This document shows positions 21,939 to 56,873 of a stretch of DNA of 64,000 nt, in pieces (positions within the stretch are counted from its first letter, which is position 1; each line of letters opens with the position of its first letter). The notes below the pieces were generated by a model. The model did no database searches, had not been told where the DNA came from, and was given only the letters and a program-made list of their open reading frames with translations. Location: the sequence record MW218148.1, one strand, 5' to 3'. A program made the translations under genes and the position numbers.

Positions 21939-21984
21939 AAATATATATTATAAAAATGAGATATTGAATAATAATTTAATATCT
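21939..21984 (+). promoter_or_regulatory. Early promoter motif + adjacent hairpin
   Basis: AAATATATATTATAAAAATGA (21939-21959) then an 11-bp stem, 21959-21969/21974-21984. Confidence 0.7.
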
Positions 21985-22015
21985 GATAATTTTATAATAT
22001 GGAGATGAAGATGAT

Positions 22016-24232
22016 ATGATTGGATCAAAATTAAAAAGTCAACTAAATAAGAAGTTTAGAGAACTAGAAAGAAGTCAATATTCTGTTTATGAAGTTGATG
22101 AAAACAAAGACTATGATCTTAATAAAGGTAAAATAAAAGTAAAGGATATTGATAAAAATATTACAGTAGAAACCAAAGTCCATTATCTTAAGTATAGAAA
22201 AGACTTAAAATGGTTAGATGGAATGTTTATTAAAGCTGAAAGTGAGAAAGAAGTTAACAAGGAAGATAAAAAGGAAGAAGATAAAAAGGAAGAAGATAAA
22301 AAGGAAGATGATAAAACAGAAATTAAAATAAAAGAAAGTCCTGAAATTGAAAATGAGAAAAATGATTTACTGACTAGTACTAGTAAGTTGAAAAGTAAAA
22401 TTAAAGAAGTTAAAAATTCTCCTGAATTTATTAGAAATACATTTTATCAAACTCTCTCAGACAAAAAGTACGGTAAAAATAGATATATCATGGATAATTT
22501 CAATCCGGGTAACGTTAATAAATCTAATGATATACATTGTAATATTCATGGTAAATTTAAAAGATCCCCTAAAGAATTCTTTAATCATGGAAAAGAATGT
22601 CCTAAATGTATGAATAGCGAAAAGATGGTAAAAGATATAGTGGAATTAAATATGTCTTCTAAAAGAGATGACTTATTTAAAGAGATAATTGATATTAACA
22701 GTGGGATGAAAATTGAAGATAGACTTACAGTACTTACTACCAAAGAACTTTTTGATGATACTTTCATATGCCAAATATACGAAAGTTGGGCTAAAAAATT
22801 ATACGATAGAGAATATGATATGTCTAAATTTAAACCGGAATACATGGTTCATCCTCAGATTATAATTTATGAAGGTAAAGAATATAAAACCACTTTAGAC
22901 TCATTCTTTAAAAAGAGAATTGACATCATACAAGACGAGGAAAAACCTGAAGAGAAAGTAAAAGAAAAACAAGTTAAGAAAAAATATAATGCAGAAGAAG
23001 AAAATAAAAAATTATTAGCGGATGTATTTAATCAGCCTGAAATTAAAATTAGTAAAGAACCTGAAAAGATTGGTAGAAAATCTTCTCAAGCTGAAAGATT
23101 TGAAAGAAATATAAGTCCACTTCCTGAACCTAAAAAGGTTGAGAAGAAAGAAGAAGATAAATATGATATTCAATATTTAATAAATACTTCTGATATGAAC
23201 TTAAATTCGAAAATACATGAAATTAATAAACGTAAGTATTCTGATGCAGAAAGATTAAGATTCTATAATGGAACTACAATTCTCAAACATGGTAGAAATA
23301 AATATATAATGGATAAATTCAAACCTAATACTATTAAACATGAGCAAGAAATAGTTTGTAAAATTCATGGTACATTCAAAATGACTCCTGGTGATTTCCT
23401 ACTTGATGGGAAACAGTGTCCTAAGTGTTCTCAAGGTAAAACTTCTATGACAGAAAACTTTGTAAAAGAATACATTAGAGATATGGGAATTGAAGTTAAT
23501 ACTTATGAAGATAGAGAAATTATTAAACCATATGGAATTGATATCATTATAGAGGATTTAAAACTAGCTATAGAAGTTAATGGAATTAAATATCATTCTT
23601 CAGAAACAAGATCTGATAGCTCAAATAAATATCATCAATTAAGAAAATTAAAAATGTTAGCTGACAAGGGTTATTCTTTAATTAGTATTTATGATGATGA
23701 AATTCCTAATGATAATAAAAATATTGGATGGGATAAATTTTCTAAGTTCCTAACTGAAATTATGCTATTTAATGAAGATTTTGTTATAGATGATTTTAAT
23801 GCACGTAGTATGCAAATAAGAGGTATTAGTTATTATAAATTTAGAGAATTCTTTGAAAATTCTAGACAACAATTTGATTCTGTAGACTTTGAATATAAAG
23901 GAGTATTCTACAAAGAGAAATTAGTATCTGTATTTTCGTATAATAAAGACACTCTTGAATGTCATAACTATCATACCGTAATGAATAATAAATATGATTT
24001 GGAGTTGATTGGAAGAACTTATAAAGATTTAAAATTTATTGTTAAACGTGATTCATACAATTCATACAAGTTAAAAGACTATGGTATGCTTTCTGTAGCT
24101 GAAACAGAACCTGAATTCTGTAATTTCACAAAAACAAAGGATTTTAAAACTAGTTACTTTAGAACTAAGAATAAAGATGTTAATAATAAAAATAAAATAT
24201 ATGACTGTGGTAAAGTAGTCTATATATTCTAA
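22016..24232 (+). CDS. Free-standing homing-endonuclease-like protein (Hef/Vsr-type PD-(D/E)XK)
   Basis: Two C.IHG.F...P..F...G..CPKC Zn repeats; ENFVKEYI...PYGIDIIIEDLKLAIEVNGIKYHS nuclease core; degenerate GNAT-like C-terminus; EDKKE repeats at 22259-22317. Confidence 0.7.
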   Translation: MIGSKLKSQLNKKFRELERSQYSVYEVDENKDYDLNKGKIKVKDIDKNITVETKVHYLKYRKDLKWLDGMFIKAESEKEVNKEDKKEEDKKEEDKKEDDKTEIKIKESPEIENEKNDLLTSTSKLKSKIKEVKNSPEFIRNTFYQTLSDKKYGKNRYIMDNFNPGNVNKSNDIHCNIHGKFKRSPKEFFNHGKECPKCMNSEKMVKDIVELNMSSKRDDLFKEIIDINSGMKIEDRLTVLTTKELFDDTFICQIYESWAKKLYDREYDMSKFKPEYMVHPQIIIYEGKEYKTTLDSFFKKRIDIIQDEEKPEEKVKEKQVKKKYNAEEENKKLLADVFNQPEIKISKEPEKIGRKSSQAERFERNISPLPEPKKVEKKEEDKYDIQYLINTSDMNLNSKIHEINKRKYSDAERLRFYNGTTILKHGRNKYIMDKFKPNTIKHEQEIVCKIHGTFKMTPGDFLLDGKQCPKCSQGKTSMTENFVKEYIRDMGIEVNTYEDREIIKPYGIDIIIEDLKLAIEVNGIKYHSSETRSDSSNKYHQLRKLKMLADKGYSLISIYDDEIPNDNKNIGWDKFSKFLTEIMLFNEDFVIDDFNARSMQIRGISYYKFREFFENSRQQFDSVDFEYKGVFYKEKLVSVFSYNKDTLECHNYHTVMNNKYDLELIGRTYKDLKFIVKRDSYNSYKLKDYGMLSVAETEPEFCNFTKTKDFKTSYFRTKNKDVNNKNKIYDCGKVVYIF

Positions 24233-24237
24233 AATAT

Positions 24238-24272
24238 ATCCCCTAATACTATTAATTTAGTATTAGGGGATT
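24238..24272. terminator. Bidirectional terminator, ATTAATTT-loop family
   Basis: CCCCTAATACT-ATTAATTT-AGTATTAGGGG; identical 34-mer at 52885. Confidence 0.8.
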
Positions 24273-24287
24273 TTATATTATTTTTTT

Positions 24288-24971: not shown

Positions 24972-25016
24972 AGATTTAATTACCTTCTTTCTAATTTTCT
25001 TTTATTTATATTAATA

Positions 25017-25028
25017 TAAATAATTGTT
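25017..25028 (-). promoter_or_regulatory. Late promoter AACA-N6-TA
   Basis: AACA attatt TA upstream of 24971. Confidence 0.6.
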
Positions 25029-25070
25029 ATGAATTATTTATATGAACCTATGCGTTTCATGAAATTTTTT

Positions 25071-25117
25071 AAATATATATTATAAAAATGAAGTGTTACT
25101 TAGCTAATAACATTTCA
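25071..25117 (+). promoter_or_regulatory. Early promoter motif + adjacent hairpin
   Basis: AAATATATATTATAAAAATGA (25071-25091) then a 10-bp stem, 25089-25098/25108-25117. Confidence 0.7.
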
Positions 25118-25148
25118 CAAAAATTTAAAAATGGAGAGTGAATAGGAT

Positions 25149-27278
25149 ATGAGTAAACAAATTTTAAACACAAGTTATTTGACAGAGGAAGAATTCAAAA
25201 AGGAAATAATGTGGTACAAAGAAGAGGTTAAAAAGAATTATCCAATTAAAAAGGAATATAGTAGAGATTTTCATAACAATGTAAATAGTTTATTTAAAGA
25301 AATTATAGAAACAATGAAAAACAATAGATTCATAGGAGAAGAAATTAGATTTGTATCATATGACTCAGACGATTACTATAATAACACTGTATATGTGGTT
25401 TATGAAATCATGGGTTATGCTTTCATAACATTGGTTAGTTCTAATGTATTTGATCTAGATGAATACAATTCTGTATTAGGTTTATTACATTTTATTAAGT
25501 CAAGCTTTATGGATAATTATAATATAGCTAGACTTTATCATGATAAAGATTATAGTTATCATAGAGCTTTAAATGTTATCTATGAAGATCATGGAGATAA
25601 TTTATTTGATCATATCATTGCCAATAAGCAGGATACTTTAGAAAAATATTCTGATAGATTACAAATGTTTGATGTTAATAAACCTTCATTTAGTGTTTAT
25701 TTAGAACAACCTGATAATGTTTTAATAGAATCTCTATTAAGCTCAAGACTATATCTTAATGAAATTAATGATGCCGACTTAATATTAGAGAACTATAAAG
25801 AAAGTAAGGTTGTTAATCCTTATGGGTTAGTTGCAACAAAAAGAAACGTATCACCAACTTACAACTATAGCCAGAAATCAGACTATCAATTATCAAATAC
25901 TTCGATGTATTACTCATCAAAAAATATAATATCACCAAATTATGATAAATATTTAGATATTGAAGGATTGGATCGCATTAATGTAACTGATATTGCTACA
26001 AATAAAATAAACAGTTCATTTAATCCTTTTAGATTAAACTTATTATCTCCATCAGGATATAATAAATTAGGTAATATAATGGTTATCTACATGTTATTAT
26101 CTGAGTTTGAAATTGAAAATTCAGAATCTTATATTGAAGATTTAGTTTCAGGATTGTTTACTAATTTTAAGAGTAAAGTTACCATTAATTCTAAAATGAC
26201 TGTAACAAGTACTGATTTGATCTCTAATAAGAGCGGTCAAGATAAGAGACTATTATATATGGACCTTCTTAATCAAGATGATGGTAGTTCATCAATTGTA
26301 TTATTCACATTAATTAATAATATGATTTACAACTACATTAATAACAATGACTTTGATTGGACTACAGCTAAGTTTGGATTATTAGACGTTATTAAATTTA
26401 ATTTAAAATCTCATAAATTAAAAGACTTCAGAAAAGAAGTTAAAGAAATTTATAAATTTAGAGTTAAGGATGTCAAATCTAAAGCTTATAAGAGAGATGA
26501 AGAATATAAGTATAAATCTTTCAAAGAAAGTGTTATGGCATATGTAGAAAAATTAGGTTTAAACAAATTAGTTAAAGATATTAATGACATATTAGGAGAT
26601 GAAGAGTTTATGAATAACGAAAAAGAATTAGGAATAACAGAATCACAAGTAGAAAAGTTCAACAGAAGATACGGTATGTTTAATGAAATCGATGAACAAG
26701 ATGAAAAAGATATTCATGAATACTTTGAAGAACTCAATAAAAATGAAGAGAAAAATGATAGTTCAGAAGATATTGACCCTAAAGTAGTTGACTTTATAAC
26801 TAGTGTAAATAGTGCTAGTGATTTAATTGCAGATAATAAAAATGATGAATACGAAGTTATTAAAGATAGTAAAATCTTCCAAGACATCACTTTTAAATAT
26901 GCAGGTCAAAAACATATTTTAACTAAAGTACCTAATTCAAAAGTTAAAGTAGAAATTAATAAGAAAAAACTTTTCATCAATTGTATTTTTGATGATGCAG
27001 AATTTAATTACTTTGTAAATTCTATTAAATTCATTGATAGCAGAAGAGTGGAGTTTACAAGTAATGAAGGGAAGTCAAAAATTGTGAATGATTATTACGA
27101 TATTCTTACAGGTGAGGAAAGCTTAAATGAAATTAGACCAACTAACGTAAGAAGAGGTTTAGACTATAATATTGACTTAATTAAGAATATCACTGGTCTA
27201 AGTAATATTTCTAAAGAAGGTAATAAAGTTTATCACAATGGTGAATTCCTATGTGAAGTAGAAGAATTAATGATTTAA
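25149..27278 (+). CDS. Hypothetical protein (709 aa, early)
   Basis: Long ORF with SD GGAGAG/AGGA; no recognisable motif. Confidence 0.75.
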   Translation: MSKQILNTSYLTEEEFKKEIMWYKEEVKKNYPIKKEYSRDFHNNVNSLFKEIIETMKNNRFIGEEIRFVSYDSDDYYNNTVYVVYEIMGYAFITLVSSNVFDLDEYNSVLGLLHFIKSSFMDNYNIARLYHDKDYSYHRALNVIYEDHGDNLFDHIIANKQDTLEKYSDRLQMFDVNKPSFSVYLEQPDNVLIESLLSSRLYLNEINDADLILENYKESKVVNPYGLVATKRNVSPTYNYSQKSDYQLSNTSMYYSSKNIISPNYDKYLDIEGLDRINVTDIATNKINSSFNPFRLNLLSPSGYNKLGNIMVIYMLLSEFEIENSESYIEDLVSGLFTNFKSKVTINSKMTVTSTDLISNKSGQDKRLLYMDLLNQDDGSSSIVLFTLINNMIYNYINNNDFDWTTAKFGLLDVIKFNLKSHKLKDFRKEVKEIYKFRVKDVKSKAYKRDEEYKYKSFKESVMAYVEKLGLNKLVKDINDILGDEEFMNNEKELGITESQVEKFNRRYGMFNEIDEQDEKDIHEYFEELNKNEEKNDSSEDIDPKVVDFITSVNSASDLIADNKNDEYEVIKDSKIFQDITFKYAGQKHILTKVPNSKVKVEINKKKLFINCIFDDAEFNYFVNSIKFIDSRRVEFTSNEGKSKIVNDYYDILTGEESLNEIRPTNVRRGLDYNIDLIKNITGLSNISKEGNKVYHNGEFLCEVEELMI

Positions 27279-27316
27279 AATTATTTTAACATCATTAAAT
27301 AACGTTTAAATTATCA

Positions 27317-27350
27317 ATAGGTGTCTTAATAAAGGCACCTATTTTTTTTT
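27317..27350 (+). terminator. Terminator
   Basis: ATAGGTGTCTT / AAGGCACCTAT stem with a long T run. Confidence 0.75.
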
Positions 27351-29267: not shown

Positions 29268-29314
29268 ATCCCCTAACCTTATTAATTTAAGGTTAGGGGA
29301 ATTTTATTTTTTTT
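29268..29314. terminator. Bidirectional terminator, ATTAATTT-loop family
   Basis: Identical over about 50 nt to the element at 2030-2080. Confidence 0.8.
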
Positions 29315-30346: not shown

Positions 30347-30907
30347 TTAATTCTTAACAAAGTTATGTTTCATCAATGTCTTAATAAATTCTTTATTAGT
30401 TAACCAGTCACCAGTATTATTAACTACTTCAAGATCAGTTGCTTCATCTAAATCTTTCTTTTCTTTCTCTAAATCTTCTCTATTTCTTCCTTCACGTTTA
30501 ACTTGATTCTTTTCATTAACTACTTGAATAGTAATAATGTCAGAATCTTCACCATATTTCTCTTTAATATCTCTTACAGAAGCATCTCTACCTTCTCTAT
30601 TTACAATAATAATATTTACATTATAAATACCATTTTGCGGATATTCTAAACTTTGATCAATTGTACCGTAATAATTTTCGTAGAAATTAGTCTTAGCTAT
30701 TAAATTACCTTTCATATCATCATATTCTTCTTTATTTAAGAATACATAATCTACACCGTTTACTTCATCTTCTCTTCTTTCTCTAGTTGTTACTTGATCT
30801 AACTTCTTGAAGAATAAGTGCGGATAATCTTTCTGATCCGATAAGTTATTTGCTAAAACTGTTTTACCTGAACCTGATACACCACATAATAATATAAATT
30901 TTTTCAT
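30347..30907 (-). CDS. gmk: Guanylate-kinase-like (d)NMP kinase
   Basis: P-loop GVSGSGKT, VTTRERREDEVNGVDYVFL, ENYYGT. Confidence 0.85.
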   Translation of the reverse strand: MKKFILLCGVSGSGKTVLANNLSDQKDYPHLFFKKLDQVTTRERREDEVNGVDYVFLNKEEYDDMKGNLIAKTNFYENYYGTIDQSLEYPQNGIYNVNIIIVNREGRDASVRDIKEKYGEDSDIITIQVVNEKNQVKREGRNREDLEKEKKDLDEATDLEVVNNTGDWLTNKEFIKTLMKHNFVKN

Positions 30908-36977: not shown

Positions 36978-37023
36978 AAATATATATTATAAAAATGATA
37001 AATGATTAAAACCATTTATCATT
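36978..37023 (+). promoter_or_regulatory. Early promoter motif + adjacent hairpin
   Basis: AAATATATATTATAAAAATGA (36978-36998) then an 11-bp stem, 36994-37004/37013-37023. Confidence 0.7.
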
Positions 37024-37043
37024 TCATCATTATTATTTGAGGA

Positions 37044-38789
37044 GTGTGTCGGATATTGGAAAGAATTGCTGAGATTGAAGAAAAGAAAGGTTTAGACTTA
37101 AAAAGGATTGATAAACTAGTTTTTAACGAAGAAGAAGTGCCATTATTATCTAGTAACGTTAATAAGCTTAATAGAGTTTATGGAGATTTTAACCCTACGA
37201 ATAAGTATATTAATTCACAAGATTTAGAGACAATAGAAAAAGAAAGTAGTAAAGGTAAAGTCGACTTTGATTACATACAAAGAGATGATATTTTACCTTT
37301 AGTTAAATTTATTGAATCAGAAAAGAATGACACTATCTTTATAGACTTCAATAAAATACTTGAAACAGATAATCGAAAAGTAAATAAAGAAGAAGATTTT
37401 AATGACATATTTACAATTCAGATTAAACAAAGATCTTACAAGAGTATATTAGATTTTATTGTTAATGATATGAATTATATTGTTAATGAAATACCGCATA
37501 TTATAATTAAAGCAGCGACTATATTAAGTAAGATTTCTAAACTTAAAGATAATTATGATGAAGTAGATTTCTTTAAAGATATACAAAATCTCATTGAAGA
37601 TGAAGATCTAAGAAATATTATTCGTTATATTGTGGAGAATAACTATACTATAAACTTAGATCAAACTAATGCTGAAGCAATGTTACAAAGTAAAAAGGTT
37701 ATTAAGAAAGACCTTCAAGTAACAGACAAAGTCAATCAGTCATTCTTATCAGCAGCTTTGTTACAAAGATTTATCATACCGTTTATTAGTCAATATTATG
37801 TAATCACTAATAAGTATCATTGTGAAAATGCTGATGCAGATAAAGAAAGAACTAAAAATGGTTATTTCAAAGCGTTCAATTATTGTATGTGCGTTGCTTC
37901 ATTTGATTATAATGTAAGTAATAATAATAAACTGTACAAGATTGTTGAACCGAAAGTAATCAAAACGAAATATAATGATAGAGTTATTTGGAGATTCTTA
38001 GATTTAAGATCTATCGATCCAGATACAGTTATCAACAAAATTATGGATAAAATTATCAGACAAATCGTATGTAAATTATTAGTTGATACTTCAGCTGTAG
38101 CGTACTTTACTTCAGTAATTAAATTCTCTATTGATTATGAATTTAAATATAAATATCCTATCAAATTCAGATCTATTAGATTAACTACTGATGACGATGA
38201 TGAGGAAGATAGCTTTGATAGATTCCAAATGAATAATTTCCATAAGGTTAATGAACGTTTAGATTTAGCTAATAAAATCACTATAGACAGATTCATTAAT
38301 GAAAGAATTAAAGAACTAGATATTTCAGATGATTATATAAATAGATTATATGATAAATTTGATTATATTAATGATCTTCAATCACACTTAATTAAAGTAT
38401 ACTTTGCTGAATACTTTAATGTAACTACTAATGATAGAAAAAGTATTGTCTCGCTTTTAGCTATCATGTCTAAAGAATTAATTAACAATAATATGGTTAC
38501 TCTAGGTAAAATTGTTGCTAGTAAAGTTATATCTGGAACTAAGGCTAAGAATGTAGGTAAACTATCTCTTGATGTTATCGCTGATAGATATTATGTTGAA
38601 GCTTGGAATAAATATAAATTTATAAATGACATCACAGAAAAAGATAATTTCATCTTAAGAATAGCTTTGGTTAATGGATATTCATTTAGTTTCACTCCAG
38701 AAGATAATAATAAAGAAGAAGAGATTATAGAAGATATTGATAAGAAGTTCTTTATATCAGAAGTGTCTCAATTCATTTCTCAGTATTAA
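37044..38789 (+). CDS. Sigma-like promoter-specificity subunit of non-virion RNAP (AR9 gp226-like)
   Basis: Ordered blocks KQRSY, IVENNYTINLDQ, DLQVTD, NKLYKIV, KTKYNDRVIW, FKYKYPIKF match my recollection of AR9 gp226; early promoter upstream. Start may be TTG at 37056. Confidence 0.7.
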   Translation: MCRILERIAEIEEKKGLDLKRIDKLVFNEEEVPLLSSNVNKLNRVYGDFNPTNKYINSQDLETIEKESSKGKVDFDYIQRDDILPLVKFIESEKNDTIFIDFNKILETDNRKVNKEEDFNDIFTIQIKQRSYKSILDFIVNDMNYIVNEIPHIIIKAATILSKISKLKDNYDEVDFFKDIQNLIEDEDLRNIIRYIVENNYTINLDQTNAEAMLQSKKVIKKDLQVTDKVNQSFLSAALLQRFIIPFISQYYVITNKYHCENADADKERTKNGYFKAFNYCMCVASFDYNVSNNNKLYKIVEPKVIKTKYNDRVIWRFLDLRSIDPDTVINKIMDKIIRQIVCKLLVDTSAVAYFTSVIKFSIDYEFKYKYPIKFRSIRLTTDDDDEEDSFDRFQMNNFHKVNERLDLANKITIDRFINERIKELDISDDYINRLYDKFDYINDLQSHLIKVYFAEYFNVTTNDRKSIVSLLAIMSKELINNNMVTLGKIVASKVISGTKAKNVGKLSLDVIADRYYVEAWNKYKFINDITEKDNFILRIALVNGYSFSFTPEDNNKEEEIIEDIDKKFFISEVSQFISQY

Positions 38790-38804: not shown

Positions 38805-38846
38805 AATAACCCATACACTTCTTATTGAGGTGTATGGGTTGTATTA
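38805..38846. terminator. Bidirectional terminator
   Basis: AACCCATACAC(T)T / GAGGTGTATGGGTT between convergent genes. Confidence 0.7.
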
Positions 38847-38872: not shown

Positions 38873-40024
38873 CTATCGGTTTAATTCACCTTCAAATAGA
38901 TAATCAATATTAATGTAAGTTCTTTCAAACACTTCTTCATTAAGTGTTTTAATTTCATTAGGATCATTAAAGTCAATAATCTGTGATGAAATTATATTCT
39001 GTATCTTACTACCGTCTATCTCATCAACTATATGTGAATGATTAAACAATTTAAATCTCTTAATTAATTCTTCCATTTTATCGTCTTTTAATTTACCTGA
39101 AAATAACTTTCTTAAAGAAGATTCATTTGCATAATCTTTAAGAGGTGATAACTCTATATCAGATATCATTTTATCTAATAATTTGACTGTAGATACTGGT
39201 CCATAACCAGGAATTGATTTGTATTCTTGATCTTTATGGTCTGTAAATAAGTTATATATGTCTAAGATATTATAGTCTATATTAACAAATTCATTAATGT
39301 CCTTTTTAGTTCCTGAACTAAATAACTCATCTTTAACATTCTCTTTTGATATAACTTTACTCTTTTCTGAACCTCTTAACTCTAATAATAACATTCTATC
39401 TTTATATTTTAATAACTGTCTGTATATTTTATCATTACTAACTATTAAAGAATAATCATTATTATTGTCTATATTAGTTTTATTTATAATATAGTATGGT
39501 AGTATAGTTGGTTCTATTTTGTAGGTATCAATAAAATATGCATTAGGAATATACTTAACTATAGTTTTAACCAACTCTAAAGTTGATTTAATTGTCTTAT
39601 TTGTATCTCTATAAGTTATATTATTTTTATCCATCTTCTTATAATATTCTTTCTTATAGTTACTATCTATATTTGTATGATAAATGGATTCTTTATCTGA
39701 ATAGAATAAAAAGAATCTACTATGCATACTTAACCTACTTGCAAAGAAATGTCTATAATGCCCTATTATATTAACCAACTCTACCACTAAATTTAATCTA
39801 TCTTTAGTTTTTATATGAGTAAAGTTTTCAGCTATCTGAGGCGAATATAACTGTTTGATTACTGAATTGATATCTATATAAACAGTAACGTTATCATTGT
39901 TTGTATAACTATTAAATTTCCCTCCTTCTACATAAGGTCTAACTAATTCTGTCATTTTGTTATAATTTAATTTTTTGGAATTTATAATACGTTCTATTAT
40001 ACTAATATCCATTATGTAACTCAC
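38873..40024 (-). CDS. 5'-3' exonuclease / FEN-like (T4 RNase H-like), divergent
   Basis: VYIDINS, IVSNDKIYRQLL (S.D.D..QL), H3TH motif SIPGYGPVSTVKLL. Confidence 0.65.
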   Translation of the reverse strand: MSYIMDISIIERIINSKKLNYNKMTELVRPYVEGGKFNSYTNNDNVTVYIDINSVIKQLYSPQIAENFTHIKTKDRLNLVVELVNIIGHYRHFFASRLSMHSRFFLFYSDKESIYHTNIDSNYKKEYYKKMDKNNITYRDTNKTIKSTLELVKTIVKYIPNAYFIDTYKIEPTILPYYIINKTNIDNNNDYSLIVSNDKIYRQLLKYKDRMLLLELRGSEKSKVISKENVKDELFSSGTKKDINEFVNIDYNILDIYNLFTDHKDQEYKSIPGYGPVSTVKLLDKMISDIELSPLKDYANESSLRKLFSGKLKDDKMEELIKRFKLFNHSHIVDEIDGSKIQNIISSQIIDFNDPNEIKTLNEEVFERTYINIDYLFEGELNR

Positions 40025-40030: not shown

Positions 40031-40051
40031 TCATTTCTATAATATATAATT
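40031..40051 (-). promoter_or_regulatory. Early promoter motif (no hairpin, SD follows directly)
   Basis: AATTATATATTATAGAAATGA, 19/21 to the consensus. Confidence 0.6.
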
Positions 40052-44365: not shown

Positions 44366-45889
44366 TTATCGTTTTAATAATTTTTCAAGCATTTCAGAAG
44401 TTAAATCTTTTTGGTTATTCTTAACTTTGTAAGCACCAAGTTTACTTTCTTTAATGACTTCAAATTTATTATGGTCTGGTAAATATTTATAAACTAATTC
44501 TCTAGTTTGGTCTATGATAATAAAGTCTAATAAGAAGAATTCATTATAAATTTTCTTAACTGCTCTACGGTCAGATAATAAATCTACACCAGTTTTACGT
44601 TTAACTTCGTTAGCTTCATCAATAGTAATCATTAAAGCTGTTGTTGGAATATAGTTAGCTTTAGCTGACTTAGCAATACCAGAAGCTTTATTAACTGTAT
44701 AAAGAGAATTTAATTTGTTCCAAATAGCACCAGAACGTCCTTTTTTAGAGTCTTGAGCTATTTTTTTAACTTTATCAGCATCTAATAATAAATCTTTAAC
44801 TAAACGTAATTCACCTGTAGTAAATTTAACTAATTTAGTTACTAAGTTTGAACCACGAGATTTATCAGAAAGATAGAAGATGATGTCTTCAGTTTTAACA
44901 ACATGAACTACTGTTTTAACACCGAATTTAACTTCTTTAGGAACTAATACTCCTGGTAAATATTCACCTTTACTATCAGTTCCCATAAAAGTAACTTTAG
45001 AAGAAATAGTTGTAGGTAAAGAAGAATTTATTTTATCTTTATCAATAACTACTTTTGCACCGAATTTTTCATCTACTTCATTCTTAGATCTAGAAACATA
45101 ACTCTCAACTCTATCTAAAAATGAATCTAAGACGGTATCATCCGATATAAATAGAACTTTGCCTTTAGCATCTTTATGAGGTTCACCATTTAAAAGATTT
45201 TTAACATTTTTTGAAGGATCACTCTCTTTAAGTCCTTTAAATTCATATTCTTCAGTTTCAATTTTTTCTTTCTCTATTTCATTTCCATCTCTATCTTTTT
45301 TAGCTTCTTCTCTTATAGTTAACTTAAGTTTCAAATCATAGGTAGTTGATGAATTTTCTTGTCTAGATTTAATAAAATCTTTTTCATCAAAATCAAATTC
45401 ATATTTTCTTGTATTTTCATTATTGCTTATTTTAAATCCTTCATTTACAAGTTCTTTCATTTCTTCTCTAGTGATAGTCATATTATTTAAAGAAGACATA
45501 TTAAATTTTTCTTCAGGAGTTTCTAATAAATAATTATTAGATCTTTTAATATCTTCTTTTGTACTTTCAGCTAAATTTACATTATTATGTAAATCAGCCA
45601 TAAATGAAGTAGGGTCTTTCGGATCAAAAGTTTGTAACGGTGAATTTGTTAATACAAAATCAAACTCAAAAGCTCTCTCTAATTCTAACTGGTTTCTCAT
45701 TAATTCAACTGTGTCTTGTTCTATAGTATCAGATGTAACTAAAGGGAACTGTAGAATGAAATCTCCTGATCTAGATTTCATTGAACGTTTTCTTTTATTA
45801 TTGTCTTTATAATTTTTTCTTATACTATTTGGTTTTATATCTTGTAATAAAGATATTACATCTGTAAAAAGATTTACTTTATTGGCCAA
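44366..45889 (-). CDS. Conserved jumbo-phage virion protein
   Basis: ILQFPLVTSD.I...LE, LAES and VNEG motifs, PTTALMITIDE; late promoter. Confidence 0.5.
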   Translation of the reverse strand: MANKVNLFTDVISLLQDIKPNSIRKNYKDNNKRKRSMKSRSGDFILQFPLVTSDTIEQDTVELMRNQLELERAFEFDFVLTNSPLQTFDPKDPTSFMADLHNNVNLAESTKEDIKRSNNYLLETPEEKFNMSSLNNMTITREEMKELVNEGFKISNNENTRKYEFDFDEKDFIKSRQENSSTTYDLKLKLTIREEAKKDRDGNEIEKEKIETEEYEFKGLKESDPSKNVKNLLNGEPHKDAKGKVLFISDDTVLDSFLDRVESYVSRSKNEVDEKFGAKVVIDKDKINSSLPTTISSKVTFMGTDSKGEYLPGVLVPKEVKFGVKTVVHVVKTEDIIFYLSDKSRGSNLVTKLVKFTTGELRLVKDLLLDADKVKKIAQDSKKGRSGAIWNKLNSLYTVNKASGIAKSAKANYIPTTALMITIDEANEVKRKTGVDLLSDRRAVKKIYNEFFLLDFIIIDQTRELVYKYLPDHNKFEVIKESKLGAYKVKNNQKDLTSEMLEKLLKR

Positions 45890-46063: not shown

Positions 46064-46210
46064 TTAAATTTTATCATAATTAGACAAAATATGCTTATTT
46101 TTAAAATCTTCGAAATCATCTCTTACTACATAAGATCCGCTTCCTATATTTCTATTAAATTTTTCCATAAAACTTTTTTCTTTCTTTTCCGATACATTAT
46201 CTTTATTCAA
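46064..46210 (-). CDS. Unlisted 48-aa ORF (possibly a frameshifted remnant)
   Basis: SD GGGGAGAG, TTG start, MNKDNVSEKKEKSFMEKFNRNIGSGSYVVRDDFEDFKNKHILSNYDKI. Confidence 0.45.
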   Translation of the reverse strand: MNKDNVSEKKEKSFMEKFNRNIGSGSYVVRDDFEDFKNKHILSNYDKI

Positions 46211-46460
46211 TTTTTGAATCTCTCCCCATTTATATTACTACTATTAAATATATTACATAAATATGTGTGAACGGACTAACCACCTTAAATATAATAGATA
46301 TAACTGTTTTGATTATTGACCTAAATGTCATTTGGGAATCTTTTTATTGGTTAACTCACTCTGTTCACATTTTGTTATTTTATACTTCCATTCATTTTAG
46401 TATAGGGGATCTAAAATGAATCGGCATATTTATATATCTTAGTAGAATATAGTATATTAA

Positions 46461-46504
46461 TGAGATGTTAATTTCTTAACTTCTCACTTTTATAATATAT
46501 ATTT
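46461..46504 (-). promoter_or_regulatory. Early promoter motif + adjacent hairpin
   Basis: AAATATATATTATAAAAGTGA (46504-46484) then a 10/11-bp stem, 46486-46461. Confidence 0.7.
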
Positions 46505-46573: not shown

Positions 46574-47551
46574 TTAAAATATTCCTTTCTTCAGTCTTAT
46601 TATATCTTGAATTGTAGTTATTTCAATATTCTCTTTTTTAGCTTTATATTCTACTAATGAATTTGCTTCCAAGAATATTTTATAATTATTCATTCTCTTT
46701 AAATCAGACCAATTAAAACCATTTCTTAAAAGATATTGTTTGGCTTCTTGATAGTCAGTATTAATTGCTCTATCAAAGTAAGTTTTATCCAATTTTTCTC
46801 TTTCTAAAAATTCTCTCACTAATTTTCTTTTTTCACTATTTATTTTTTCTTCTTCTTTATTTATATCCCTTACAATGTTAAAATCAAGATCATATTCTAT
46901 ACCTTCATTAATATATATAAATTCATCTCCTCTTACTTGTTTTTCCATTTTTTCTCTTGCCAATTCTTCAACCAATTTTTCTTCAGATCTAAGAAATACA
47001 TTTTCGAAGTATTCTCTATCAAATTTATACTTACCATTAGAAAGATCTATAACTATAAATGGATATTCTGGTTCTCTTACCAGACCCGGACCAGCTTTTA
47101 TATTTCTGCCTTTTTTATTTTTTATCAGTTTTCTAAGTCTCATTTTACCAACTGAATCTTCCTTTCTAAAACCTATAAAATCATTAAGTCTATATATATT
47201 ATAATCTTTATCTACAGCAAATATTCTTTTCCCTCTAGTTAACATATCCATTCTATTAAGATATTCTAATTCTTCTCCTGTAATATTAAATTCAAAATCC
47301 ATCTTTCTTTCGAATCCTTTGAAGTCACAGTTTCTTATACAATCTTTCATTGTATCAAATTTTTTAATATACATCTTTTCTTCTACTGCGTCATTATGTT
47401 CACTACCAATAGAATCAATAAGAATATTTATCGTACTTGAAAAAGTAGATCCTTTACCATCATCTATTTTTCTTCTTCCCATAAATTTGTCTACTTTGTC
47501 ATAATATACATTATACTTCTCTTGTATACTTTTTCTATATTTAATACCCAT
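46574..47551 (-). CDS. Hypothetical protein (325 aa, early)
   Basis: Long K/E-rich ORF with SD AAGGATGG. Confidence 0.7.
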   Translation of the reverse strand: MGIKYRKSIQEKYNVYYDKVDKFMGRRKIDDGKGSTFSSTINILIDSIGSEHNDAVEEKMYIKKFDTMKDCIRNCDFKGFERKMDFEFNITGEELEYLNRMDMLTRGKRIFAVDKDYNIYRLNDFIGFRKEDSVGKMRLRKLIKNKKGRNIKAGPGLVREPEYPFIVIDLSNGKYKFDREYFENVFLRSEEKLVEELAREKMEKQVRGDEFIYINEGIEYDLDFNIVRDINKEEEKINSEKRKLVREFLEREKLDKTYFDRAINTDYQEAKQYLLRNGFNWSDLKRMNNYKIFLEANSLVEYKAKKENIEITTIQDIIRLKKGIF

Positions 47552-47613: not shown

Positions 47614-47733
47614 TTACTTCTTTTGATACATCTTGATCGTTTCCCTCATCCACTTTGCTTTCTTTGCCGCTTTCTTCGCCATTGCTCTGTTTCTCTTGTG
47701 ATTGAGTATCATTTGCTTAATTATCTCTTTCAT
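47614..47733 (-). CDS. Unlisted 39-aa highly basic peptide
   Basis: SD AAGGATGG; MKEIIKQMILNHKRNRAMAKKAAKKAKWMRETIKMYQKK; first gene after an early promoter. Confidence 0.65.
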   Translation of the reverse strand: MKEIIKQMILNHKRNRAMAKKAAKKAKWMRETIKMYQKK

Positions 47734-47760: not shown

Positions 47761-47802
47761 AGTTGATAGTTATTATCAACTTCATAATTATAATATAAAT
47801 TT
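47761..47802 (-). promoter_or_regulatory. Early promoter motif + adjacent hairpin
   Basis: AAATTTATATTATAATTATGA (18/21) then AGTTGATA-ataac-TATCAACT. Confidence 0.6.
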
Positions 47803-51883: not shown

Positions 51884-52867
51884 ATGGCTAAAACATTTAT
51901 TTCTGATTACCGTAAAAATCAAGCTAATCTTAATAGAAAAGCAGCTAATGCTTTAGAACAGAAAAAGTACAATGATAGTATTAATGAAGAATTACAAGTA
52001 TCAAAAGAAAAAGATTTAATTGCAGGTAGAAATAATAAATTACGTGCTAATAATAAAGTAGCTATTAATAATGCTAAAAACAAATCTGAGAAGGATCTTA
52101 AAGATTTAAACTCTCAAACAATTATGACAACTTTATTTTCAGCTTTAGTATTTAATACTTTCCCTAACAAAATTGCGGATAAATCTAAATTACGTGAGAA
52201 AATTGTTTCTAAGAGTAGATTATTCTTTAATGAAGCTATGAATGCTGAATTAGCTACTTATCAAGGTAGTGAAGTATTCTCTAACGCTAAATTTAATGCA
52301 GATGTATATGCTAAAGATGCTCGTGGAGTAATTGATCCTAAGGATTCAATCAAAGGAGCTAAAGTAGTATATCAAAAAGGTAGAACTGAATTTGATTACT
52401 TAACAAACGTAGTTGCTAAGAAAATTGAATCAGCTGTAATCCGTGAATCTGAATTGGTTGATGTTCGTGAAAAGTTAAATGAAAGTTTAGCTGACACTCA
52501 CAAAAAGAATAATAAAACTCTATTCCGTAGTTTACACGAATCAGCTATTAATAATATTGTAAATGATGAAGCTTATCTTAAAGAAGAAGTTTCTGCTGAA
52601 GAAGTTAATATGGATGCTTTAGTTGAAGCTACTTTAGACTACACTATTATGGAATTAATCCATACTGCTAAATTAAGTACATTTAACATGGCTGAAGTTC
52701 AAAAAGCAGTTAAGAATGGTTCTATTAAAGTTAATACTAAACAGTCAAGTAAAGTTAATCCTGAAAATGGATCTACTAAACCTTCTGGTGACGGTGTTAC
52801 GCCTAGAACTGTTGGTAATGAAAATAAAATTAAAACAGGTTCAGTTAAATTAAATAACGAAGAATAA
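51884..52867 (+). CDS. Putative virion internal/scaffold-like protein
   Basis: Helical K/N/A-rich protein with INEE, IRES, LNES, LHES motifs; late operon. Confidence 0.45.
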   Translation: MAKTFISDYRKNQANLNRKAANALEQKKYNDSINEELQVSKEKDLIAGRNNKLRANNKVAINNAKNKSEKDLKDLNSQTIMTTLFSALVFNTFPNKIADKSKLREKIVSKSRLFFNEAMNAELATYQGSEVFSNAKFNADVYAKDARGVIDPKDSIKGAKVVYQKGRTEFDYLTNVVAKKIESAVIRESELVDVREKLNESLADTHKKNNKTLFRSLHESAINNIVNDEAYLKEEVSAEEVNMDALVEATLDYTIMELIHTAKLSTFNMAEVQKAVKNGSIKVNTKQSSKVNPENGSTKPSGDGVTPRTVGNENKIKTGSVKLNNEE

Positions 52868-52884
52868 AAAAAAATAATATAAAA

Positions 52885-52918: not shown

Positions 52919-52923
52919 ATATT

Positions 52924-54675
52924 TTAAAAGTCATCAAATATTTTTCCTGGTTCAAAGGCTTTATCTTCTTCACTGGCTTCTTTAGCTAAAGCATTATTTC
53001 TAAATTGATTAGCTATAGTTGACATTGTATTTTGTGCTCTTTCTGAGTTTATTGTATTCTCTAAATTAGAACCGATAGATTCCACACCTCTAATTTCTGC
53101 AGTACCCTCATCAACACTAAGTTTAAATGAGTTATCGAATGGTTGAGCAAAGTATTCAATTCTATCTTCACCCATTTTACCACGACTAGCTATAAGTTTA
53201 AATGATAAATGATCGTCTTGACTCTCATCTTTAGCATTCTCTCTATTAATGATTATACCATAGTCTAAGTTTTCTAGAATCATAGCAGATTCGGCTACCT
53301 GACTTCTATCTAACTGTTTGGCAATATCTGTCTTATTCTCACTTAAAGCTTTTTCCACATTCTTATATGCTTCTCGGTTTAATTGAGCTGCTGTTACTAA
53401 CGGAATATCTTTCTCTTTAGCAAATACTGTAAATTCATCTGTAATTGCACCTAAACGTATACGTAAATCTTCAATATGATCTGAAGCTCTAATACGTTTT
53501 AAATAGTCTTGTACCATCATAATCATTTGGTATCCTTGATCAGCTAAGTTTTCATATACTTCATATAAATAATCAGTTGATACTTCATTATTTTTCTTGT
53601 ATTCAACTACTAAACTAATACCTGTTTTTTCATAAGTGTATTTAATTAATTCATTAACACATTCTTGAGGTGTTTGATCTGATTCACTCATAGAATGACC
53701 TGTTACATATTCATACATTCTATCCAATGATTCACTCATAGAGTTTTCCATAGTTAAATAGTAAACTACAGGTTTTTTATTAGGATCAATAGTCTTGATA
53801 TTATCAGCTTTATTTGCTAAAGTAACTGACATTAACATATTAAGTAAAGTACCTGATTTGAATGACTTAGGTGTTCCGAAGAATGAATAAACACGACCAT
53901 TTTCGAAACCTCCATTAATCATTTTATTTAACATCTTATAACCTGTTTTTAACTTGTTAGATGGATTACGTAGTTTATCAATAGAATCGGCCATTACTTC
54001 TACTGCATTGTCTATTTCTAAAAAGTTAATAAAACTATTCTTAGTTGATCCAGCCCCACTAGAAGTTCTTTTAATAACTTTGTTTACATCAGAAATAGGT
54101 TCAATTACTTGTTTTAATAAGTCAGTTGGATTAAGTCTATCCATTGTAATTTGATCATAAATATATTTAAATACATCTGCTTTTTGATAAAGTTCTAAAG
54201 TAGCAAATCTTTCTTTAATATAAACATTAATCTGATCTATTTCTCTGTCTGATAATTGTTCTATTTCATTCTTATAATAATTATCAACAGTTTTAAGAGT
54301 TTCATATAAATGACTTTCTGACATTTGATTTTTAAATTTATCAATTAGATGTTCAATTAAGATATCTGGAGACTCAATGGATTCTTCTAGTCTTATCTTA
54401 ACCAATTCTTTAAGTACCTTAACTGTATCTTTTTGATGTTGTTGACCTTCATCATATACATAATCCTCATTAAGATTCTCTAAAAATTTATCTAGCCTTT
54501 TTAAATTTGTTGCATTAATTAAACGATTCTCAGTTATTGTATACTTAATTATCTGCATTAGTGTGTTATAAGGTATACTTATATTAGCGTAATTAATAAG
54601 TTGGTTATTGTCATTAATGTAAAAACTACCATTATTTTGTTTATTATTCATATTTGAATTGTCTAAAAATGCCAT
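52924..54675 (-). CDS. dnaB: Replicative DnaB-like helicase
   Basis: KLKTGYKMLNKMINGGF, Walker A GTPKSFKSG, LTMENS, MVQDYL, TAAQLNR, ESAMILENLD, KLIASR. Confidence 0.88.
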   Translation of the reverse strand: MAFLDNSNMNNKQNNGSFYINDNNQLINYANISIPYNTLMQIIKYTITENRLINATNLKRLDKFLENLNEDYVYDEGQQHQKDTVKVLKELVKIRLEESIESPDILIEHLIDKFKNQMSESHLYETLKTVDNYYKNEIEQLSDREIDQINVYIKERFATLELYQKADVFKYIYDQITMDRLNPTDLLKQVIEPISDVNKVIKRTSSGAGSTKNSFINFLEIDNAVEVMADSIDKLRNPSNKLKTGYKMLNKMINGGFENGRVYSFFGTPKSFKSGTLLNMLMSVTLANKADNIKTIDPNKKPVVYYLTMENSMSESLDRMYEYVTGHSMSESDQTPQECVNELIKYTYEKTGISLVVEYKKNNEVSTDYLYEVYENLADQGYQMIMMVQDYLKRIRASDHIEDLRIRLGAITDEFTVFAKEKDIPLVTAAQLNREAYKNVEKALSENKTDIAKQLDRSQVAESAMILENLDYGIIINRENAKDESQDDHLSFKLIASRGKMGEDRIEYFAQPFDNSFKLSVDEGTAEIRGVESIGSNLENTINSERAQNTMSTIANQFRNNALAKEASEEDKAFEPGKIFDDF

Positions 54676-54700
54676 ATCGTAAATACACTCTCCGTTACTA

Positions 54701-55852
54701 TTATTTTTCTTTACTTAGATTGATCAAGTCTTCAAAATCTGGATCAATAATATTTTTTACCTCTTTTAAGTCTAACTCTTTATCATGTTTAATAGTATTA
54801 AACTTAACAATTGTCTCAGGTGTATCAAGTTCATCATCTAATATGAATTGATACTTTTCGTCCACTTTAACTTCCTTGATATTTTTGTTGTTAAATTGAA
54901 CCTTTATATTTTTATCAGAACTTGAAATTTGTTTAATTATATCAACATCATCCTTAGAAGTTGAAATGAATCGGACATAATCATTTTCTTGACGTAATTC
55001 ATTGATTATTTCCATCTTCTTTTGGTCCGTTAGACTCTCATACTCATCCATGTAAACTGTAACGTAAGTAGGTGCTTCTTCATTATCTATTAATTCCACA
55101 TTATAATTATCTGTATCAAGATCATTAGTTACTACCAAGAACCCTTTATCTTTAGTATCTTTAAATGAATATCTTGAATATGAACCAGTATAGTATACTT
55201 TATCTTTATATTCGTGATAATCATGAATATGTCCATATACAGATACTCCTTTAGTAACTCTCATTAATTCTTTTGCTTCTAATATTGGAGCTGATTTAAC
55301 TGGATTCTCTGAATCATCCTCATCTGGAACGAATGTGACAAAATCAATCATTCCATGTCCAAATATATTATCATACGTATTATCTTCAACTGAATAAAGT
55401 AATTCATTATAGAATTCTTTTTTATCATCTGGATATTCCTCAGGTATATAAAGTAAATTAACTTCTTTACCATTATGTTTGATTAATTCAGTTTCTAAAG
55501 TATTAATAATTTTAAAATTATCATATTCTAATTCATTTTGATTAAATACATCAAGTTGATTAAAGTCATGAGTTTTAGTTCCTTTAATTAATCTAAGTAA
55601 GAAGTTTTTATTTTTACTTAATTCAAACATTTTATCCATGAACTCTAATACTTCTTTCCCAGCAGGTTCATTAAATCTAAGAACTCTATCAAATAAGTCA
55701 CCTGAAATAACTACCATATCAATGTCATCATTATCTTTTATATATTTTAAAAAATACTTATCTAATTCATCAGATAATTTTTTTGGATTCTTTTTACCAT
55801 AATGTATATCTGCAATAACGACTGTTTTAAATTGTTTACTCATCACTATCAT
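54701..55852 (-). CDS. sbcD: SbcD/Mre11-like metallophosphoesterase nuclease
   Basis: IADIHYG, ISGDLFD, GTKTHD, GHG, GHIH, YTGSY. Confidence 0.9.
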   Translation of the reverse strand: MIVMSKQFKTVVIADIHYGKKNPKKLSDELDKYFLKYIKDNDDIDMVVISGDLFDRVLRFNEPAGKEVLEFMDKMFELSKNKNFLLRLIKGTKTHDFNQLDVFNQNELEYDNFKIINTLETELIKHNGKEVNLLYIPEEYPDDKKEFYNELLYSVEDNTYDNIFGHGMIDFVTFVPDEDDSENPVKSAPILEAKELMRVTKGVSVYGHIHDYHEYKDKVYYTGSYSRYSFKDTKDKGFLVVTNDLDTDNYNVELIDNEEAPTYVTVYMDEYESLTDQKKMEIINELRQENDYVRFISTSKDDVDIIKQISSSDKNIKVQFNNKNIKEVKVDEKYQFILDDELDTPETIVKFNTIKHDKELDLKEVKNIIDPDFEDLINLSKEK

Positions 55853-56249
55853 CCTTTACTAAAAAGTCTATCATCTTCATAAGAGTTTCTTTAACATATT
55901 TTAGATCTCGATAAACTGAATCATCGTTCAACATCATCAATCCACTAAAATAAATTTCTGGAGATAAATCACCATAATGACAACAATCAAAACCAATTAT
56001 TCCATTACTGTCATAAGTAATTCCTCCATGAGAATAATATTCGACATCTTTATTATAATTATAACCAACTTCAATATAACCATTTAAAAATCCCAATTCA
56101 TGCCTTATTATAAAAGCATTATAACCTTTATATTCAAATTCATACTTATTCTTTCTAACTCCAAGTATTTTATTTTCTTTTTCTAAAATGTGTTTAAGAG
56201 TATCAATATCATTCATCTTCTCCAATCCCTTTCTTATTTTGATCATCAA
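55836..56249 (-). CDS. Conserved phage hypothetical protein
   Basis: GFLNGYI...HGGITY...GFDCCHYGD, a motif recalled from many phage proteins of unknown function. Confidence 0.65.
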   Translation of the reverse strand: MMIKIRKGLEKMNDIDTLKHILEKENKILGVRKNKYEFEYKGYNAFIIRHELGFLNGYIEVGYNYNKDVEYYSHGGITYDSNGIIGFDCCHYGDLSPEIYFSGLMMLNDDSVYRDLKYVKETLMKMIDFLVKDDSDE

Positions 56250-56709
56250 TCTCCATTATCATCTTCATTTTTTCATCAAATTCTCCTGATTCAATGTTCT
56301 CTTTAATACTATCTTTCAATTTACCGTTAATACTTTCTCTATTAGTTTTGATAAATTCATATACAGCATCAGCTAATTCATCTGTCATACTTACTAGATT
56401 AGCTTCATTATTATCGTCAAACTCTAAATATGCAAAAGCTGTTTTACCAAAACATGGTAATCCTCCGAACATCATAAAGTTAATATCTTCTTCTGTAAAT
56501 CTTTCTCCTACTTCCCCAAAGTAAGTAAATGAAACTACTGAATGTAATGGAGCTGGCATAACATCCATTGTAATATTCTCTACTGGAATATCCAATTCTT
56601 CTGCCATAGTTTCATACATATTATTCTCTTCAAAAATTACTTCTTTCCTTGTGTAATCATCCTTATTTGGTTCAATAAAAACAAAATTAATTTTCATTAT
56701 CTCTTTCAT
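56209..56709 (-). CDS. Hypothetical acidic protein (early)
   Basis: 166-aa ORF heading the sbcD-dnaB unit. Confidence 0.65.
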   Translation of the reverse strand: MKEIMKINFVFIEPNKDDYTRKEVIFEENNMYETMAEELDIPVENITMDVMPAPLHSVVSFTYFGEVGERFTEEDINFMMFGGLPCFGKTAFAYLEFDDNNEANLVSMTDELADAVYEFIKTNRESINGKLKDSIKENIESGEFDEKMKMIMEIDDQNKKGIGEDE

Positions 56710-56852
56710 CTCCTATTTGTATTAGTATTTTACTATATTTATATATTAATTCAACTATCAAAATTTCTTAATCAAATTTTTTTAAAATTTATCCGAAATA
56801 ATAATATTATTATTAAGGTTTAAAAGTTAAAAATATATAAATATTAATAATT

Positions 56853-56873
56853 ACTTTAATATAATATATATTT
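56853..56873 (-). promoter_or_regulatory. Early promoter core
   Basis: AAATATATATTATA core (then TTAAAGT), about 145 nt upstream of 56709. Confidence 0.5.

Follow-up and report, generated by a model that had tools for sequence, protein, structure and literature searches.

A stem-loop at the predicted 5′ end of early transcripts in Staphylococcus jumbo phages that use the AR9-type early promoter

The early promoter of Bacillus phage AR9 has been described as AAATATATATTAT-(6N)-G(+1), based on differential RNA sequencing (dRNA-seq), primer extension and chloramphenicol-insensitive early transcription; the authors ascribed it to the injected virion RNA polymerase (RNAP) and reported that one mismatch in the core can abolish promoter activity (Lavysh et al. 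2017, PMC5312081). The AR9 GenBank record labels these 13-mers as early promoters. An AR9-like motif was later found by MEME ahead of 29 genes of phage MarsHill, and hairpins are unmentioned in that report (Korn et al., bioRxiv 10.1101/2020.12.14.422802). With respect to structured RNA 5′ ends, Bacillus subtilis RppH is known to require at least 2–3 unpaired 5′ nucleotides, and RNase J1 is blocked by 5′ roadblocks, 5′ stem-loops and bound ribosomes, examples being the aprE leader (a 5′ stem-loop plus ribosome binding), ompA and the SP82 5′ stabilizer (PMC3997798). Here we analyzed a stretch of 64,000 nucleotides (nt) from record MW218148.1, hereafter the window, in which copies of a 21-nt motif containing the AR9 core are followed by hairpins. 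We observed that in three clades of Staphylococcus jumbo phages most promoters of this type carry a stem-loop of variable sequence that begins at, or within two nt of, the predicted transcription start.

By megablast the window is 100% identical to positions 196728–260727 of Staphylococcus phage vB_StaM_SA1 (SA1, MW218148.1), and it forms the final 64 kb, the right-hand end, of this 260.7-kb jumbo phage. Its GC content is ~26%. SA1 is kin to S6, PALS_2, MarsHill and Machias/PB50 and more remotely to Bacillus phage AR9/PBS1; it encodes split virion and non-virion multisubunit RNAPs, β and β′ fragments being annotated in SA1 and PB50. Positions given below refer to the window unless the SA1 record is named. 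The 21-mer stands where the original prediction had placed it, with exact copies at 21939, 25071 and 36978 on the plus strand, copies with one, two and three mismatches at 46504, 40051 and 47802 on the minus strand, and an exact 14-mer at 56873 (−). Allowing at most 3 mismatches, we found 7 copies of the 21-mer in the window compared to 0.22 expected, a number reached in 0 of 100 shuffles. For the 14-mer with at most 1 mismatch there were 9 copies compared to 1.63 expected, the site at 56873 (−) among them. Further copies that had not been predicted lie at 15783, 27681 and 30901, all on the minus strand and all within open reading frames (ORFs), and they are doubtful as promoters.

The 21-mer is composed of the 13-nt core AAATATATATTAT, the commonest spacer AAAAAT, the start G and the following base, and its first 13 nt are identical to the AR9 core. 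Four window sites carry the core without a mismatch, those at 40051 and 47802 differ from it at one position each, and a G stands 6 nt past the core at 7 of 7 window sites. Judged from its sequence, each site is best explained as an early promoter of the AR9 type recognized by the injected virion RNAP, a multisubunit enzyme, with the start site taken from AR9 homology. The assignment as early promoter made in the original prediction is thus supported through homology to the mapped AR9 promoter, and the promoter itself is already known. As the G of the TGA that ends the motif is the predicted +1, the hairpins would sit at the extreme 5′ end of the RNA. A search of IMG/VR with the exact 21-mer yielded only 13 single scattered matches, several of them in giant-virus metagenome-assembled genomes, and no relatives were gained; we judged these matches to be due to chance. 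An Rfam scan of the window returned only a tRNA-Ser (21317–21392), from which it follows that the leaders are covered by no known RNA family.

Folding of positions +1 to +40 confirmed the five hairpins claimed for the sites at 21939, 25071, 36978, 46504 and 47802 (z-scores from −3.0 to −3.9), and at 40051 and 56873 no hairpin was found by this fold (z +0.75 and −0.25). A genome-wide scan, which the original prediction had proposed as a check, was run on the genomes of SA1, S6, PB50 and AR9, assembled from annotated records, for cores with at most 1 mismatch and a G at +1. It gave 34 sites in SA1, 39 in S6, 39 in PB50 and 31 in AR9. For sites with a Shine–Dalgarno sequence (SD) and an ORF of at least 30 amino acids (aa) we calculated the z-score of the +1 to +40 fold against dinucleotide-shuffled 40-mers. 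The median was −3.6 in SA1, −4.2 in S6 and −3.5 in PB50 compared to +0.3 in AR9, and the median leader length was 55.5, 55 and 60 nt in the three Staphylococcus phages compared to 32 nt in the Bacillus phage. Defining a 5′-anchored hairpin by a stem start at +1 to +3 and a ΔG of −4 or lower, we found one at 78 of the 112 early sites of SA1, S6 and PB50 pooled. Relative to the predicted start, the stem begins at +1 in 60 of these, at +2 in 7 and at +3 in 11, a register that lends indirect support to the predicted start at the G; stems comprise 5–18 pairs (median 10) and their 3′ end lies near +28.

The anchored hairpin is rare in the groups used for comparison. Only 2 of 31 early sites in AR9 carry it (Fisher p = 1e-10). 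Among predicted late-type 5′ ends of SA1, S6 and PB50 (AACA-N6-T[AG] ahead of ORFs with a minimum length of 100 aa, the early motif being absent) 10 of 96 do, with a median z of ~0 and leaders of 36–48 nt (Fisher p = 5e-19 compared to early sites). A first criterion (start at most +3, at least 6 pairs, no energy cut-off) let through about 30% of intergenic controls and was therefore replaced by energy-bounded criteria and matched controls. Under a lenient hairpin criterion 20% of intergenic G positions pass. In a stricter test demanding the first paired base at +1 and a ΔG of −6 or lower, 19 of 34 SA1 promoters passed compared to 8.3% of SA1 intergenic G positions (p = 2e-12). A sliding-window test of the register is uninformative, because windows placed within a stem likewise fold from the first nucleotide onward, and explicit stem-start counts were used instead. 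Motif copies without hairpins were also found in the sampled regions of BpSp (a B. pumilus phage; 41 kb) and LPJP1 (a Listeria phage; 27 kb), and in these regions as in AR9 there was no conserved A-rich spacer, GARG start or stem-loop. The absence of the hairpin from AR9 and from the sampled BpSp and LPJP1 regions suggests that it is an addition of the Staphylococcus clade to an older promoter. No description of the hairpins was found in the literature searched, including the papers on MarsHill, the SA1 genome, the SA1 transcriptome and DC4; within that literature the pervasive, conserved and clade-specific +1 stem-loop is undescribed.

Next, we compared orthologous promoters, which were paired by tblastx of the downstream 700 nt; pairing of proteins via regex-called start codons was unreliable. 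In total 21 SA1 promoters could be paired with orthologues in S6, PB50 or both. In most orthologues the +1-anchored stem is kept and its sequence changed, and some loci have three unrelated stems in the three clades. With SA1 as reference, 235 base pairs were unchanged, 19 had changed on one side and 14 on both sides and still pair, the latter being compensatory, and 33 one-sided and 5 two-sided changes broke the pair. It had been predicted that structure rather than sequence is conserved, and the compensatory changes together with complete stem turnover at orthologous promoters agree with this. Hairpins are gained and lost as well: the promoter at SA1 record position 82447 has no hairpin and a 33-nt leader and its orthologues in S6 and PB50 have one, and S6 241290 is without a hairpin (27-nt leader) where SA1 and PB50 have one. 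Hairpin-less promoters are conserved within all three Staphylococcus clades.

A perfect palindrome is identical on both strands, and stems were therefore searched with a scoring that treats G·T and A·C mismatches alike. Among interior mismatches on the sense strand we counted 23 G·T versus 4 A·C (p = 3e-4), or ~16 versus 4 after collapsing orthologues by eye. This excess of G·U over A·C points to selection on the sense RNA and not on an antisense RNA or a DNA cruciform. The leader around the stem is regular too. From the 3′ end of the hairpin to the SD there are 10–21 nt in nearly all cases, and hairpin-less promoters mostly leave 0–27 nt between the 5′ end and the SD, which resembles AR9 (median SD start +17). 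The spacer of hairpin-bearing promoters has T at −1 in 94% and A in 63–85% at the other positions and is more conserved than in AR9. Transcripts would open with GAAG, GAGA or GAGG, which gives G–C pairs at the base of the stem. Past the stem, A makes up 56% and T 37% of the next 8 nt; with this share of A there is no U-tract, and a sense-strand terminator was ruled out on that ground. The hairpins also lack the arrangement of an intrinsic terminator, a stem directly followed by a U-tract, and a terminator scan flagged no window hairpin on either strand.

The stem start at +1 to +3, the compensatory changes, the G·U bias of the sense RNA and the tight spacing to the SD lead us to favor a role at the RNA 5′ end. 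From these features we infer a function for the +1 hairpin, and we consider it moderately probable that it is a 5′-terminal stabilizer of early mRNA against decay of the RppH/RNase J type; RNase J may be the specific nuclease. In such a scheme the virion RNAP would recognize the 13-nt core AAATATATATTAT, pass an A-rich 6-nt spacer ending in T and initiate at the next G. The transcript of a Staphylococcus phage would usually open with GARG and fold at once, with its first paired base at +1 (sometimes +2 or +3). The stem (8–14 bp) would end near +28 and be followed by an A-rich spacer of ~16 nt and then the SD. A paired triphosphate 5′ end would offer no single-stranded nucleotides to an RppH-type pyrophosphohydrolase, to the 5′-exonuclease RNase J1/J2 or for 5′-end-dependent entry of RNase Y, and the short gap behind the stem would be covered by the initiating ribosome. 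Early mRNAs could in this way persist during host RNA turnover. The short leader of the AR9 type with its 5′-proximal SD might then be an alternative answer to the same decay problem.

Several points weigh against a purely 5′-terminal stabilizer. The position of +1 in the Staphylococcus jumbo phages rests on AR9 homology, the orthologue counts are not phylogenetically independent, and the late-type control consists of motif predictions only. Hairpins are lacking in the Bacillus phages AR9 and BpSp although B. subtilis has the same RNase J, RNase Y and RppH enzymes, and the idea of a 5′-proximal SD in place of the hairpin is only a correlation. Moreover, palindromes run upstream of +1 into the spacer, on average by 1.5 nt compared to 1.04 nt under a permutation null (p = 2e-4), and in 11 of 60 hairpins starting at +1 in SA1, S6 and PB50 the extension amounts to at least 3 nt compared to 5.1 expected. 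Such an extension is not predicted by a purely 5′-terminal RNA role. A canonical terminator lies just upstream of only 4 of the 78 hairpin-bearing promoters, so that read-through transcripts contain the hairpin at an internal position as well, where it could have an effect. Finally, the hairpin module GAGGTAATGAC... occurs at gene ends with T-runs as well. Duplicating palindromic modules, an extra role in read-through RNA or heterogeneity of the start site are possible explanations of these misfits.

Other readings place the function of the hairpin in transcription. The original prediction considered a hairpin that takes part in promoter recognition in the manner of phage N4, where a short DNA hairpin of conserved sequence upstream of +1 is read by a single-subunit RNAP. 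We disfavor this, as the stems lie downstream of the start and hairpins are missing from AR9, BpSp and LPJP1, which share the core; conserved hairpin-less promoters in the Staphylococcus phages and the gain or loss of hairpins between orthologues argue in the same direction. Nor did the sites show a DNA hairpin of constant stem and loop ahead of +1, the stems instead spanning +1 to +28, varying in sequence and being absent from AR9; a hairpin downstream of the start that AR9 lacks is not an N4-like promoter element. More broadly, the hairpin could be a cis-element of the virion RNAP, either a DNA hairpin or cruciform used for recognition or a nascent-RNA hairpin that acts in clearance, against backtracking or R-loops, or by modifying the polymerase like put RNA. 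Strict coupling to +1, confinement to the early class with absence from predicted late 5′ ends, palindromes that reach upstream beyond chance, and a spacer and first transcribed bases that vary less than in AR9 (T at −1 in 94% of hairpin-bearing promoters; GARG start) would all suit such an element. We nevertheless regard it as distinctly unlikely: the same core is active without a hairpin at experimentally mapped AR9 starts, hairpin-less promoters persist in three Staphylococcus clades where orthologues gain and lose the hairpin, and the stem is complete only at ~+28, after promoter escape. In addition, the G·U bias speaks against an element at the DNA level, and variation of the stem in sequence, length (5–18 pairs) and loop is more in keeping with a generic structure than with a binding site for the polymerase. 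A related proposal, for which we see a small but appreciable chance, is that the Staphylococcus-phage machinery of transcription or RNA fate requires the +1 hairpin as a clade-specific cis-element that does more than shield passively, be it for put RNA-like processivity of the virion RNAP through long, terminator-poor early arrays or as a tag by which a phage factor tells early phage mRNAs from host mRNAs during shut-off. Consistent with this proposal are the surplus of stems that reach upstream of +1 and the fact that the hairpin is strictly confined to early-class promoters and not seen in the Bacillus and Listeria relatives.

If the hairpin served the opposite strand, it would form together with the complement of the spacer and core (ATTTTTATAATAT...) a bidirectional terminator or insulator that halts transcription running against early genes. 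The A-rich spacer, most commonly AAAAAT, and the occurrence of the same hairpin module at gene ends with T-runs fit this proposal, and as terminators too need a stem tightly beside the T-tract the register alone is compatible. A sense G·U is an antisense A·C mismatch, however, and the count of 23 G·T to 4 A·C runs the wrong way; strong hairpins also stand behind the spacers TTTATT and TTTAAT, whose complements are poor U-tracts, and stems often reach into the spacer and use up the supposed U-tract. Since the scan that flagged no window hairpin on either strand did find a distinct GC-rich terminator family, and most early genes stand in long arrays of one orientation, where there is no evident opposing transcription to stop, we think this quite improbable. 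It is unlikely, too, that the hairpin is mainly an element of read-through RNA, i.e. a barrier to 3′-exonucleases, a weak terminator of the upstream cistron or a processing site overlapping the next promoter. The absence of a U-tract (the 8 nt past the stem being 56% A and 37% T) disagrees with this proposal, which also gives no reason why the stem should start exactly at +1 instead of anywhere between genes, and the +1 hairpin is still present where a canonical terminator precedes the promoter (21939 and 46504). On its side are the separate upstream terminator at only 4 of 78 promoters, upstream stop codons that can overlap the promoter core (SA1 record 63818), the upstream stem extension, which could form only in read-through RNA, and the action of the same module as a terminator elsewhere. 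Very improbable, finally, are neutral or selfish palindromic repeats that gather in AT-rich intergenic DNA with a function unconnected to the promoter. AT-rich DNA does fold readily, 20% of intergenic G positions passing the lenient criterion, and there are recurrent hairpin families, GAGGTAAT with 10 copies and GAAGAAAG with 6 copies, the module occurring in unrelated intergenic contexts. Such repeats would not account for a frequency of 70% over a background of 10–20% in a sharp +1 register, for hairpins that three clades have kept through compensatory changes and full replacement of stems, or for a strand-specific G·U bias and a fixed SD distance.

In the window, the plus-strand promoter at 21939–21958 has the exact motif with the 13-nt core, the spacer AAAAAT and the predicted +1 G at 21958; it stands ahead of ORF 22016–24232 and just downstream of a canonical terminator (~21885–21917). 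Its stem-loop (21959–21984, +) covers +2 to +27 with 11 bp, a minimum free energy (MFE) of −8.8 kcal/mol and z −3.9, and its orthologues in S6 and PB50 have different stems anchored at +1. The exact motif at 25071–25090 (+1 G 25090) lies ahead of ORF 25149–27278, and its transcript probably ends at the terminator 27316–27343. There the stem-loop (25090–25116, +) spans +1 to +27 with 9 bp including one G·U (MFE −7.2, z −3.0), and S6 and PB50 show a double compensatory change from GT/AC to AC/GT. The exact motif at 36978–36997 (+1 G 36997) precedes ORF 37056–38789 (+), annotated as ‘hypothetical’ in SA1, which we found to be a homologue of AR9 g226, the specificity subunit of the non-virion RNAP (nvRNAP; E = 2e-31). 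Its homologues are labeled as nvRNAP specificity subunit in MarsHill, Madawaska, Machias and PB50, and AR9 g226 likewise has an annotated early promoter. The stem-loop at this site (36997–37020, +) covers +1 to +24 with 8 bp (MFE −7.5, z −3.8), and the DNA palindrome reaches 4 nt further upstream (36993–37024).

On the minus strand, the site at 40032–40051 has one mismatch in the core, the +1 G at 40032 and no hairpin; its SD begins at +3 and the start codon at 40012, which leaves a leader of 20 nt, and this hairpin-less short-leader state is kept in S6 and PB50. At 46485–46504 the 21-mer has one mismatch and the +1 G lies at 46485, and the stem-loop (46462–46485, −) spans +1 to +24 with 9 bp and one A·A mismatch (MFE −8.3, z −3.8), its counterpart in S6 being a perfect stem. 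This promoter leads via a small ORF (46064–46210) to the gene of a minor virion structural protein (44366–45889); the claim that all sites precede non-structural genes thus holds only roughly. AR9 also has an early promoter upstream of g214, the homologue at this locus. The promoter at 47783–47802, with one core mismatch and the +1 G at 47783, stands ahead of the small ORF 47614–47733 and ORF 46574–47551; its stem-loop (47761–47781, −) covers +3 to +23 with 8 bp (MFE −7.4, z −3.75). At 56854–56873 the core is exact with the spacer ATTAAA and the +1 G at 56854; without a 5′ hairpin and with a leader of ~150 nt it heads the operon 56709–52924, which includes a metallophosphatase and a DnaB-like helicase, and it is syntenic with the AR9 promoter 47–59 that precedes g001–g007. 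Unusually long leaders are thus seen twice, ~275 nt (46211–46485) before the 48-aa ORF 46064–46210 and ~150 nt (56710–56854), and AR9 has a similar gap of ~340 nt past the syntenic promoter upstream of g214. These leaders (46211–46485 and 56710–56854, both −) could hold unannotated small ORFs or RNAs.

Two of the doubtful copies have one core mismatch and the G. That at 15764–15783 (−) lies in sense orientation inside the virion RNAP β gene (15312–19568) and is conserved in S6 as coding sequence; the homologous AR9 gene holds a real early promoter, but inside an intron. The other (30882–30901, −) covers the first codons of a guanylate kinase gene (30347–30907) and has no hairpin. At the far end of the window, the linear GenBank record and the window finish together, and the ORF of a 1995-aa tail protein (58005–63992, +) stops 8 nt earlier.

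Canonical terminators of this phage belong to a distinct GC-rich repeat family, marked by stems of CCCCTAA...TTAGGGG, loops of the ATTAAT type and T-runs behind them, and within the window they lie at 24238–24271, 29269–29300, ~21885–21917, 27316–27343, 38806–38842 and 21160–21189. The module GAGGTAATGAC...GTCATTACCTC was found in 10 copies at +1 of early promoters in the three phages (e.g. SA1 record 22626, 63837 and 70500), and also free of promoters at gene ends with T-runs (SA1 record 52386–52415 and 157142–157170, and likewise in S6 and PB50). A second hairpin family, GAAGAAAGATA..., has 6 copies in S6 and PB50. The 5′ hairpin at SA1 record 178543 has on its inside exactly the inner stem-loop of the terminator at 24238 (AATACTATTAATTTAGTATT), and from this shared piece terminators and 5′ hairpins seem to draw on common palindromic modules.

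Published RNA sequencing (RNA-seq) classes of SA1 fit the promoter map, the match being limited to genes named in the text of that paper, after aligning its ORF numbering to the record. ORF169 (ATPase), directly behind the promoter at SA1 record 159511, and ORF256 (metallophosphatase), in the operon behind 56873, were reported as early. The nvRNAP subunit genes behind promoters are ‘middle’, and ORF248 (minor virion structural protein), behind 46504, is the sole structural gene in the ‘middle’ class. The virion RNAP genes, which have no motif, are late, as is RNase HI, which is separated from the promoter at 25071 by the terminator 27316–27343. Two further promoter copies were observed outside the window. 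One, with one core mismatch, is followed after ~1.1 kb by ORF8, which encodes a retron-like reverse transcriptase and was classed as ‘early’ by the published RNA-seq, and a like case is the 153520 region of PB50; as there is no annotated ORF between this copy and ORF8, the interval (SA1 record 9518–10647) might encode a non-coding RNA. The other, at PB50 record 205657 (−), is followed within ~15 nt by an apparent tRNA gene (D-arm-like GCTCAGTTGGTAGAGC), which suggests early tRNA transcription.

Taken together, our findings suggest that early transcripts of Staphylococcus jumbo phages follow a rule readable from the sequence, consisting of the core, the spacer, the G, a stem at +1, ~16 nt and the SD. 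All three clades keep to this rule, and the Bacillus and Listeria relatives share the promoter but not the rule. Structured 5′ ends on one side and 5′-proximal ribosome sites on the other make these phages a natural comparative experiment on 5′-end-dependent mRNA decay in phages of Firmicutes. For annotation, it follows that +1 hairpins should not be labeled as terminators. If the stabilizing role is true, the promoter and leader could serve as compact parts for staphylococcal expression or phage engineering.

Compared to described systems, the hairpins resemble the intrinsic terminators of the same phages in that some of the latter use the GAGGTAATGAC...GTCATTACCTC stem-loop and AT-rich palindromic loops such as ATTAAT are common to both; the terminator copies stand at gene ends and are followed by T-runs, whereas those at promoters begin at +1, and behind them come an A-rich tract and the SD. 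With N4 these phages share an injected virion RNAP and an inverted repeat adjoining the start site, but here the stems lie downstream of +1, vary in sequence and length, tolerate G·U in the manner of RNA and are dispensable in the sister phage AR9. Similar in geometry are the known 5′ stabilizers, i.e. ompA and papA of Escherichia coli and aprE of B. subtilis, together with the roadblocks of ermC and the SP82 polypurine sequence: a stem within 0–2 nt of the 5′ end with a ribosome binding site close behind is an arrangement known to block RppH and 5′-dependent RNases. Those cases are single genes with measured half-lives, whereas here most promoters of one temporal class are concerned and the effect on stability is putative. 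The promoter itself is that of AR9/PBS1, a member of the same lineage with two multisubunit RNAPs: the 13-nt core is identical, the spacing is likewise 6 nt and the start is a G. [quoted passage not shown] The Staphylococcus phages differ from AR9/PBS1 by a more conserved A-rich spacer ending in T, the GARG start and the 5′-terminal stem-loop, which stretches their leader from ~32 to ~55–60 nt.

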